This document shows positions 52,993 to 56,355 of a DNA stretch of 64,000 bases, piece after piece (positions within the stretch are counted from its first letter, which is position 1; each line of letters begins with the position of its first letter). Below the pieces are notes generated by a model. That model saw only the letters and a list, made by a program, of their open reading frames with translations. It did no database searches and was not told where the DNA came from. Position numbers and translations under genes: made by a program. The stretch comes from Anolis carolinensis. Its lineage: Eukaryota. The stretch spans positions 106,689,190 to 106,753,189 of the forward strand of contig NC_085846.1 of assembly GCF_035594765.1 (NCBI RefSeq), given 5' to 3'.

Positions 52993-52993
<1 letters not shown>

Positions 52994-53066
<73 letters not shown>
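52994..53066. repeat. (TAA)n microsatellite
   Basis: Directly visible, about 24 units. Confidence 0.98.
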
Positions 53067-53068
<2 letters not shown>

Positions 53069-53633
53069 TTCCGTAGCCCACTTGTCGATGGATGTCCAGA
53101 ATCAGCAGCATCCACCGGGGTCCTTTTTATCCTGGGCGACGACCGAGCCAGTATAGACTTCGTTTTGGTTTGATTCTCCATAATGCTAATGGTTAGGTGC
53201 TCTTAGTTCTGCTCCTCAGCTGAGGCCTCTCTGGCTTGGTTGGACCTGCCGGTAGTTACACTACCGCCAGCACAGCCCCCAGTCATCATTGGAGCAGTTA
53301 AGCCCCCCCACCACGTCAAGCCGCTATCAGGACCTCAAGATTGAACTTCAAAGACTCTGGCAGAAACCAGTGCAGGTGGTCTCGGTGGTGATGGGCACAC
53401 TGGGTGCCGTGCCAAAAGATCTCAGCCGGCATTTGGAAACAATAGACATTGACAAAATCACGACCTGCCAACTGCAAAAGGCCACCCTACTGGGATCTGC
53501 GCGCATCATCCGAAAATACATCACACAGTCCTATACACTTGGGAAGTGTTCAACTTGTGATTTTGTGAAACAAAATCCAGCATATTTATCTTGTTTGCTG
53601 TGTCATACAACGTCGTTGTGTCAATAATAATAA
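53067..53633 (+). mobile_element. Dong/R4 non-LTR retrotransposon, internally deleted, with inverted 5' segment
   Basis: 53321-53633 (+) encodes RYQDLKIELQRLWQKPVQVVSVVMGTLGAVPK...QLQKATLLGSARIIRKYI (end of an R4-clade restriction-like endonuclease), then a 3' UTR ending in (TAA)n. 53067-53320 (-) holds a structured 5'UTR-like segment and an ATG at 53181. Confidence 0.8.
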
Positions 53634-54129
53634 TGATGATGATGATGATGACAACTCGGGCAGCTCACAACGGAATCAAATTACAATGCATACATAAGCT
53701 TGGTTTCATGTGCAAAAGTATTTAATATATTGTATGGAATTATCTTCTTCAGGCTCTGTGTATAAGGTATACATGAAACACAAACTAAAGCACAAACCTT
53801 TGCTCCAAAACATTTTGATATGGGATACTCAACATGTAAAGTAATCCAAAAGGTTGTCTGCTTCCGTTAGAGGCAGGCATGGGCAAACATGTGTCCTCCA
53901 GGTGTTTTGGACTTCAGCTCCCACCATTCCCAACAGCCTACCGAAATCCCACAAAGGGTGCATCTACACTGGAGAATTAATGCTGTTTAATGCCACTTTC
54001 AACTGCCATGTCCCAAAGCAATAAAATCTTGGGATTTGTAGTGTAGTGAGGCAATTTTAGTGGGTTTTAGTTCTGTTTTTACTATACTTTGTCTATTCAA
54101 TTGTTTTTTATCTTTTTTATTGCTCTTTT

Positions 54130-54733: not shown

Positions 54734-56355
54734 TTGTTGTTGTTTATTCGTTCAGTCGCTTCTGAATCTTTGTGACCTCATGGAACAGCCCACGCTAGAG
54801 CTCCCTGTCGGCCGTCACCACCCCCAGCTCCTTCAAGGTCAAGCCAGTCACTTCAAGGATACCATCCATCCATCTTGCTCTTGGTCGGCCCCTCATCCTT
54901 TTTCCTTCCATTTTTCCCAGCATCATGATCTTTTCCAAGCTTTCCTGTCTTCTCATGATGTGGCCATCTTGGTCTCCTATATCCTTCCCTCCAGTGAGCA
55001 GTAGGGCATTATTTCCTGGAGTATGGACTAGTTGGATCTTCTTGTGGTCCAAGGCACTCTCAGAATTTTCCTCCAACACCACAGTTCAAAAGCATACATC
55101 TTCCTTCGCTCAGCCTTCCTTATGGTCCAACTCTCAGATCCATAGTTACTACAGGGAATACCATTGCTTTAACTATGCAGACCTTCGTTGTCAATGTGAT
55201 GTCTGTACTCTTCACTATTTTCTCAAGATTGGTCATTGCTCTCCTCCCAAGAAGTAAACGTATTCTGCTTTCCTGGCTGCAGTCTGTGTCTGCAGTCAAC
55301 TTTGTGCCTAGAAATACGAAGATTGTCATTGCTTCCACGTTTTCTCCCTCTATTTGCCAGTTGCCATAATCTTGTTTTTTTTATGTTTAACTGCAGCCCA
55401 GCTTTTGCACTTTCTTCTTTCACCTTGGTTATAAGGCTCCTCCTCGCTTTCAGCCATCAAAGTGGTATCATCTTCATATCTAAGGTTGTTAATGTCTCTT
55501 CCAGCCATTTTAACTCCAGCCTTGGATTCATCAAGCCCCGCATGTCGCATGATGTGTTCTGCGTACAAGTTGAATAGGTAGGGTGAAAGTATGCAGCCCT
55601 GCCGTACTCCTTTCCCAATCTTGAACCAGTCTGTTGTTCAGTGATCTGTTCTGACTGTTGCTACTTGGTCGTTATACAGATTTCTCAGGAGACAGACAAT
55701 GTGACTTGGTATCCCCATACCACCAAGAACTTGCCACAATTTATTGTGATCCACACAGTCAAAGGCTTTAGAATAGTCAATAAAGCAGAAGTAGATGTTT
55801 TTCTGAAACTCCCTGGCTTCCTCCATTATCCAGCGGATATTGGCAATTTGGTCTCTCGTTCCTCTGCCTTTTCTAAACCCAGCTTGTACATCTGGCAACT
55901 CTCACTCCATGTATTAATGGAGTCTACCTTGTAGGATTTTGAGCATTAGCTTACTGGCATGGGAAATAAGTGCCACTGTACAAAAGTTTGAGCATTGTTT
56001 AGCGTTTCCCTTTTTTGGTATGGGGATACAAATTGATTTTTTCCCAATCTGATGGACATTCTTATGTTTTCCATATTTGCTGGCATATGGCATGCATCAA
56101 CTTGACTGCATCATCTTTCAAGATTTTAAACAGATCAGCTGGAATCCCATCATCTCCTGCTGCCTTGTTATTAGCAATGCTTCTTAAGGCCCATTCAACC
56201 TCACTTCTCAGGATGTCTGGTTCTACTTCACTCACCACAGCATCAAAGTTGTCCTCAATATTATCTTTCCTATACAGATCTTCTGTACAGTCTTTTGACC
56301 TCTTCAGCTTCTGTTAGGTCCTTGCCATCTGTTTTTGAGCATGCCTATTTTTGCC
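54734..56355 (-). mobile_element. BovB-type RTE LINE, 5'-truncated and degenerate
   Basis: PDVQAGFRKGRGTRDQIANIRWIME...FIDYSKAFDCVDHNKLW, NNLRYEDDTTL, SLEKIMMLGKMEGKR..GRPRARWMDGI; (CAA)n tail. Confidence 0.93.

Follow-up and report, generated by a model that had tools for sequence, protein, structure and literature searches.

What RNA lies upstream of the start codon on the minus strand near position 53,200 of the window, the 64,000-nt stretch of Anolis carolinensis DNA analysed here? A sequence-only reading had described it as a pseudoknotted RNA at the 5' end of a minus-strand Dong/R4 element and had proposed a distinct, larger, and undescribed ribozyme or translation-initiation element. 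We found that the stretch is very probably the relic of an HDV-like ribozyme that makes up the 5'-terminal ~144 nt of the green anole Dong/R4 element. The surviving part is the 3' seven-eighths of that ribozyme, comprising L3, P3', P1', the P4 arm, J4/2, and P2'. The features of the leader and of the surrounding insertion are listed in Table 1.

Table 1. Positions in the window of the parts of the Dong/R4 insertion and of its putative ribozyme leader (strand: +, plus; -, minus;., not stranded)
Feature	Position	Strand	Remarks
(ATA)n = (TAA)n microsatellite, upstream insertion target	52993..53066	.	TRF: 24.7 perfect copies
Inverted 5' segment of the element: leader without its first ~17-20 nt, plus first 38 codons	53067..53320	-	
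ATG and first 38 ORF codons, abutting the microsatellite	53067..53181	-	ATG, 53181-53179
P2' strand GCACCUA	53194..53200	-	Partner UAGGUGC absent here, taken from consensus; 7 Watson-Crick pairs
J4/2, AACUAAGA	53201..53208	-	Between P4 and P2'; presumed catalytic C at 53206
P4 arm, 89 nt	53209..53297	-	MFE structure = centroid; z = -2.42
Helix C	53297-53291 with 53215-53209	-	
CUGA, box D-like kink-turn strand	53216..53219	-	Next to helix C; read directly
Helix D	53282-53277 with 53225-53220	-	
Helix E, CUGGC/GCCAG, 5 bp, plus mini-hairpin in the arm	53270-53266 with 53235-53231	-	
Hairpin GGUAG-UGUAA-CUACC	53265-53251	-	
AAUGAUGA, box C-like kink-turn strand	53283..53290	-	3-nt bulge AAU, then GA; read directly
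J1/4, CUUAA	53298..53302	-	Read from the fold
P1' strand GGGGGG	53303..53308	-	Partner CCCCCC absent here, taken from contig-end consensus; 6 bp
P3' strand GGUG	53309..53312	-	Pairs with CACC (4 bp), of which only the last C, 53320, survives
L3 loop, UUGACGU (7 nt)	53313..53319	-	
Inversion junction, dinucleotide AG (+ strand) common to both pieces	53319..53320	.	2-nt microhomology
Last ~70 codons of the Dong/R4 ORF	53321..53534	+	91-94% identity to the C termini of three Anolis carolinensis proteins
3' UTR of the element	53535..53622	+	Deep contig coverage stops at ~53624
(TAA)4(TGA)6, tail or downstream target	53623..53650	+	Sequence read

The element was identified by its coding sequence and its target. 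The three Anolis carolinensis proteins that match the C-terminal piece carry CCHC and PD..D..E/K motifs of the REL-endonuclease type, and more distant full-length relatives carry RVT_1 followed by the same C-terminal motifs. The ORF start on the minus strand is 70% identical in DNA sequence, over 88 nt, to the ORF start of a metagenomic R4-like locus (L001). The insertion lies between (ATA)24.7 on its upstream side and (TAA)4 on its downstream side; in many metagenomic relatives, the element begins immediately behind (TAA)n, and Bombyx Dong targets (TAA)n (PMC3774820). By sequence, the element is Dong/R4-like, in agreement with the assignment made in the sequence-only reading. The window also holds, at 55437-56072 on the minus strand, a reverse transcriptase fragment of another, unrelated non-LTR element, with 24 to 32% identity to the R4-like reverse transcriptase region.

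The leader had been placed at the 5' end of a minus-strand element. We found instead that the locus is a plus-strand, (TAA)n-targeted Dong/R4 insertion with an inverted 5' fragment inside it. We mapped Logan contigs of four runs onto the region, which gave divergence points, depth, and the variants of other copies. Both pieces are highly repeated in these contigs. Because copies of the 3' part diverge before 53319 and copies of the 5' part diverge behind 53320, we assigned the AG at 53319-53320 to both pieces; the Anolis proteins align from 53319 onward. Beyond 53320, the upstream sequence on the minus strand is the antisense of the ORF in the 3' piece. The word depth of the 5' part was roughly 10 to 20 times below that of the 3' part, a figure that, according to the tool's own warning, is not a copy number. 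In direct orientation, the plus-strand insertion retains no more than the final ~300 nt of the element. The family stop codon at 53532-53534 is TAT in the window copy, and 53534 is G or A in most copies (TAG/TAA). As a side effect of the TAT, the window ORF stays open across the 3' UTR and ends at the first TAA in the tail, giving an ORF of 112 codons. A self-BLAST of the 64-kb window with the leader as the query found no further copies, a word search with the 38-residue N terminus gave no candidates, and no RNA runs containing the stretch were found.

The segment at 53067-53320 is inverted, that at 53321-53622 is direct, the two share the AG, and both lie between (TAA)n flanks, as is typical of twin priming. 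A fragment without its own 3' end cannot insert alone, and a twin-priming-like event therefore is the simplest account and best explains the rearrangement. In such an event, a second cDNA would have been primed about 270 nt into the element RNA, extended almost to the RNA 5' end, and then joined to the short first cDNA through the 2-nt microhomology. Twin priming of L1 (Ostertag and Kazazian 2001, cited in PMC5389967) likewise combines an inverted 5' segment and a direct 3' segment at one target with microhomology at the junction. The anole event differs from the L1 case in that the element uses a REL-endonuclease, in that ~3.4 kb of the element has been lost between its two segments, and in that the inverted cDNA ends within the ribozyme core, 17 to 20 nt before reaching the RNA 5' end.

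The ~17 to 20 nt that the window copy lacks comprise the entire 5' strand of both P1 and P2 and all but one of the four nucleotides of the P3 5' strand. The sequence-only reading had correctly noted the loss of a few 5' nucleotides. In run X8, 29 contigs of other copies extend past 53320 and give the sense-strand consensus CUCCCCCC-GUAGGUGC-CAC (~19 nt), directly before CUUGACG; this consensus is drawn from 30-nt contig ends of one run (median loose-end length, 13 nt; agreement, 0.62) and is not a read-out of a full-length copy. It turns A/T-rich 2 to 3 nt before the C run. The consensus supplies exact partners for GGGGGG, GCACCUA, and GGUG. The likeness to HDV had been noted earlier, with C-UUGACGU-GGU taken as P3/L3/P3' and CUAA...GCACC as J4/2 plus P2', and the missing strands complete this same parse.

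We found that the composite of the window and the consensus has the order P1-P2-P3-L3-P3'-P1'-J1/4-P4-J4/2-P2', with the ATG 12 nt after GCACCUA. It contains 17 Watson-Crick pairs; P2 abuts P3, and P3' abuts P1', without intervening nucleotides. J4/2 has a cytosine, C53206, between helix C and GCACCUA, and analogy with the HDV family points to it as the putative catalytic residue. P1.1 consists of at most one G-C pair, C53302 with G53317 of L3, in reversed polarity relative to HDV, and L005 and L026, two looser relatives, do not keep the pair. P1 starts with C (or with a U.G pair), not with the usual G. With P1 and P2 lacking their 5' strands and P3 most of its own, the window copy can neither form the double pseudoknot nor cut, and it is dead.

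We then compared the composite with background. With a descriptor that allowed Watson-Crick pairs only, the score of 17 pairs was reached 5 times in 128 kb of the window, or ~0.008 expected per 200 nt. A G-U-tolerant HDV descriptor matched about once per 1.3 kb; topology alone is thus weak evidence, and we discarded this descriptor as too permissive. Pattern scans of genome and viral contigs gave only chance matches in bacterial and phage DNA, and ARAGORN made no calls on the region. The sequence-only reading had also proposed an Rfam search. At the gathering score and at E values up to 10, Rfam gave no HDV-type match in the window, in 20 related loci, or in L026. At E values up to 10, there were nine matches in the window and one in L026, all to unrelated families and far below the gathering scores. 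Covariance models ignore pseudoknots, and the window copy is clipped at its 5' end. To our knowledge, Rfam has no family based on R2, R4, or Dong ribozymes. The Rfam result counts against formal membership in an Rfam family, not against the fold.

Among 80 metagenomic R4/Dong-like loci, one (L029, on metagenome contig OFES01007445.1) has a stretch that is 70% identical to the anole leader and a complete 5' end. Its P1 pairs CCUCGC with GUGAGG (6 pairs, with two double changes relative to the anole sequence), its P3 is CACC/GGUG, unchanged, and its L3 is UUGUAGU. Helix E is CCGGC/GCCGG, with one double change, and the hairpin is GGGAC/GUCCC, with two. Over P1, helix E, and the hairpin, we thus counted five compensatory double changes and zero broken pairs, in a comparison of two sequences only that were aligned by eye at the helices (MAFFT mis-registers them) and that ends where L029 ends, inside P4. 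These changes support the fold and are not proof of it. In looser relatives, L3 is UUGAUGU or UUGGCGU and lies in a 4-bp hairpin, with a G run after it. When the anole leader was aligned by MAFFT with those of L005 and L026, the sequences proved too divergent except at the P3/L3/P1' motif.

These data bear on whether there is a functional RNA here at all. The leader could be simply G+C-rich, with fortuitous helices and an HDV parse that is mere pattern matching. We found that the 139 nt taken together have no exceptional stability (z = -1.74, equalled by 11 of 200 shuffles), and this reading also draws on the high false-positive rate of the loose descriptor and on the lack of an Rfam match. 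It does not account for five compensatory double changes without a broken pair in sequences that are only 70% identical, for the rarity of the Watson-Crick-only match in background, or for the cleavage shown in Dong of Bombyx, an element of the same clade (PMC3774820). We consider it very improbable that the leader has no functional RNA, and an HDV-like ribozyme remains our reading.

The sequence-only reading was accurate in its coordinates. All seven elements that it listed are present on the minus strand where it put them, CUUG (53320-53317) and CAAG (53238-53235) among them, and CUAA-GAGCACC is present at 53206-53196. The spacer from GAGCACC, which ends at 53196, to the ATG at 53181-53179 is 14 nt, 1 nt longer than it gave. 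Helices C and D and the hairpin form an arm that folds exactly as it had drawn them, with helix E in addition, and this arm alone has a z of -2.42, with 3 of 200 shuffles folding as well. Variants in other copies at 53210, 53211, and 53225 give G.U wobbles, and position 53279 is in an A-U pair in most copies and in a G.U pair in the window copy. A variant at 53277 could pair with the variant at 53225. Four of the five variants in helices C and D thus keep pairing by themselves and the fifth could be compensated, which by a hand calculation is not significant (p ~0.19).

The pairing that the sequence-only reading had drawn between CUUG and CAAG, helix A, did not hold up. It is the only thing that makes the structure drawn in that reading a pseudoknot. 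CAAG occurs in 23% of shuffles of the 51-nt interior, and in 53% of shuffles the first 8 nt find a Watson-Crick partner for some 4-mer, so that helix A is at chance level. One of its bases, G53235, is also used by helix E. In L029, the partner is CAUG, which leaves a U.U mismatch with no compensating change. These results weigh on the proposal of a distinct, larger pseudoknotted RNA, either a new ribozyme class or a translation-initiation element common to the R4 and RTE clades. The other helices exist, the arm is stable, and the structure ends 12 to 14 nt before the ATG, all of which such an RNA would share. Against it, helix A is at chance level and in competition with helix E, and the 5' strand of helix A is L3 of an HDV fold that the missing strands complete. 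Moreover, all of the extra length is in P4, which is highly variable in this ribozyme family (PMC3774820). We regard a distinct RNA of this kind as extremely improbable and place the arm within an HDV-like ribozyme as its P4.

Between helices C and D, we found a loop that is, as read from its sequence, a perfect kink-turn motif of box C (AUGAUGA) and box D (CUGA). The predicted order is helix C, the AAU bulge, G53287.A53216, A53286.G53217, a U.U pair, G53284-C53219, and helix D. No variant at a frequency of at least 10% falls on these positions among the variants listed for other copies. In L029, the 5' strand is AAUGACC and keeps only AAUGA, that is, the bulge and the first GA. We found no paper in the literature searched on a natural kink-turn in an HDV-like P4, and the motif is possibly the sole new feature of this RNA.

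The same motif raises the possibility that the arm (53297-53209) is a box C/D kink-turn module in its own right. As a snoRNA-like RNP handle, it would have a function independent of a ribozyme, for example, nucleolar targeting or small-RNA release. AUGAUGA and CUGA are placed exactly as box C and box D are relative to a terminal stem, and the box positions carry no common variant among the genomic-copy variants listed. Rfam, however, gave no match to a snoRNA family on the minus strand, and the ~60 nt between the boxes are fully paired, which leaves no guide region. L029 keeps only part of the box C-like strand, and the arm is nested exactly at the position of P4. We consider an independent snoRNA-like module quite unlikely. 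If the arm is P4 of an HDV-like ribozyme, its kink-turn could recruit an L7Ae-family protein (SNU13/15.5K) to the uncapped, processed 5' end, as a composite of ribozyme and RNP that substitutes for a cap. From the motif, we put this forward as a speculative and rather unlikely extension; if it is true, the cap substitute would stabilize the RNA or steer it to the nucleolus or to translation.

We next considered how an intact copy would work, by analogy with the assayed ribozymes of Bombyx Dong, R4, R2, and L1Tc. Transcription would run through the upstream (TAA)n into the element, and the RNA would fold into the double pseudoknot and cleave itself immediately before P1, with the cytosine of J4/2 (53206) as the catalytic residue. 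Cleavage would leave an uncapped element RNA that begins at its own first base, with a compact 5' fold beside the start codon. We infer the cleavage, and any role in protection or translation, from these relatives. Reportedly, Ruminski et al. linked retrotransposon HDV-like ribozymes to translation initiation in 2011.

The closest known systems are the ribozymes of Bombyx mori Dong and Ascaris R4, which belong to the same clade and to elements with a REL-endonuclease and a single ORF. The sequence-only reading had stated that HDV-like ribozymes occur at the 5' ends of R2, R4, and RTE elements, and the literature bears this out; R4, Dong, RTE, L1Tc, and Baggins are listed as cut at the 5' end by such ribozymes (PMC3774820). 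Bombyx Dong RNA self-cleaves in vitro at the 5' junction, after seven TAA repeats (PMC3774820). Like the anole element, Bombyx Dong has a (TAA)n target and a pyrimidine-rich first strand (GCUCCCU in Bombyx and CUCCCCCC in the anole). Its ribozyme, like the putative one of the anole, occupies the extreme 5' end, and the Bombyx RNA is cut where the element begins (PMC3774820). In contrast to Bombyx Dong, the anole P4 is much longer (89 nt) and has the kink-turn motif, and P1 begins with C or U rather than G. Cleavage was shown for the Bombyx RNA, whereas the anole ribozyme is a prediction from sequence.

R2 ribozymes, known from Drosophila and many other animals, share with the anole composite the double-pseudoknot order, a P1 of 6 to 7 bp, and a P2 of at least 5 bp. 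Their P4 is variable, their J4/2 holds one catalytic C, to which C53206 would correspond, and the titles of published papers link them to processing and translation initiation. They differ in that they are cut from a 28S rRNA cotranscript, with a P1 that often uses upstream 28S sequence. Upstream of the anole element, in contrast, is the microsatellite, and both strands of P1 seem to belong to the element itself. The L1Tc/Pr77 ribozyme of Trypanosoma cruzi likewise begins a non-LTR element, at its nucleotide +1. Its P1.1 is a single pair, against at most one in the anole composite, and its authors discuss a 5' end that bears no cap and is protected by the fold (PMC3185411). It is different in its length of 77 nt, its short P4, its second function as an internal promoter, and its clade, which has an APE endonuclease; this comparison is one of features.

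The device type, the clade, and the proposed link to translation are already published. With the anole leader, a known kind of self-cutting RNA, one that sets where a retrotransposon transcript begins, is extended to a vertebrate Dong/R4 family. This family is still polymorphic in anole populations (PMC5389967), and we found no description of the ribozyme in Anolis in the literature searched. The locus itself should be annotated as a dead, inverted, 5'-clipped fragment and not as a candidate for a new RNA class. Two features may merit examination across the genome, namely, the P4 kink-turn motif and the inverted 5' ends that occur repeatedly in the clade.

We also looked at the leaders of other R4-like elements. 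In L001 (positions 10-95) and L010 (positions 107-195), the leader that follows (TAA)n or (TGA/TAA)n looks tRNA-like by eye, with D-loop-like AGUUGGUCUAGUGG and T-loop-like GGUUCAAUUCC or GUUCGAACCC. These leaders occupy the place of the ribozyme-like hairpin in other relatives, and neither ARAGORN nor Rfam called a tRNA in them. The leaders of six further loci (L003, L004, L006, L008, L009, and L011; for example, L006:120-330) start with GCGCCAGU, and the first 7 nt are complementary to the loop of a hairpin, UCGG-CUUGGUGC-CCGA. The stem of this hairpin is CCGG/CCGG in L027, a compensatory change, and before the ATG there are two to four tandem-like modules of CUAAGGGAG-N4-ACCCUNACAGAAAA. We tried an HDV parse on leaders of this type (L003, L004, L006, L008, L011, and L027) and rejected it, as none was consistent with the first base of the element.

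The architecture of the anole locus is seen again in L029 (positions 1-145), an element from another organism. There, the leader is inverted (nt ~124 down to 1) and directly abuts a plus-strand ORF, whose homology to relatives begins at about nt 145. This suggests that 5' inversions that reach the RNA 5' end recur in the Dong/R4 clade.
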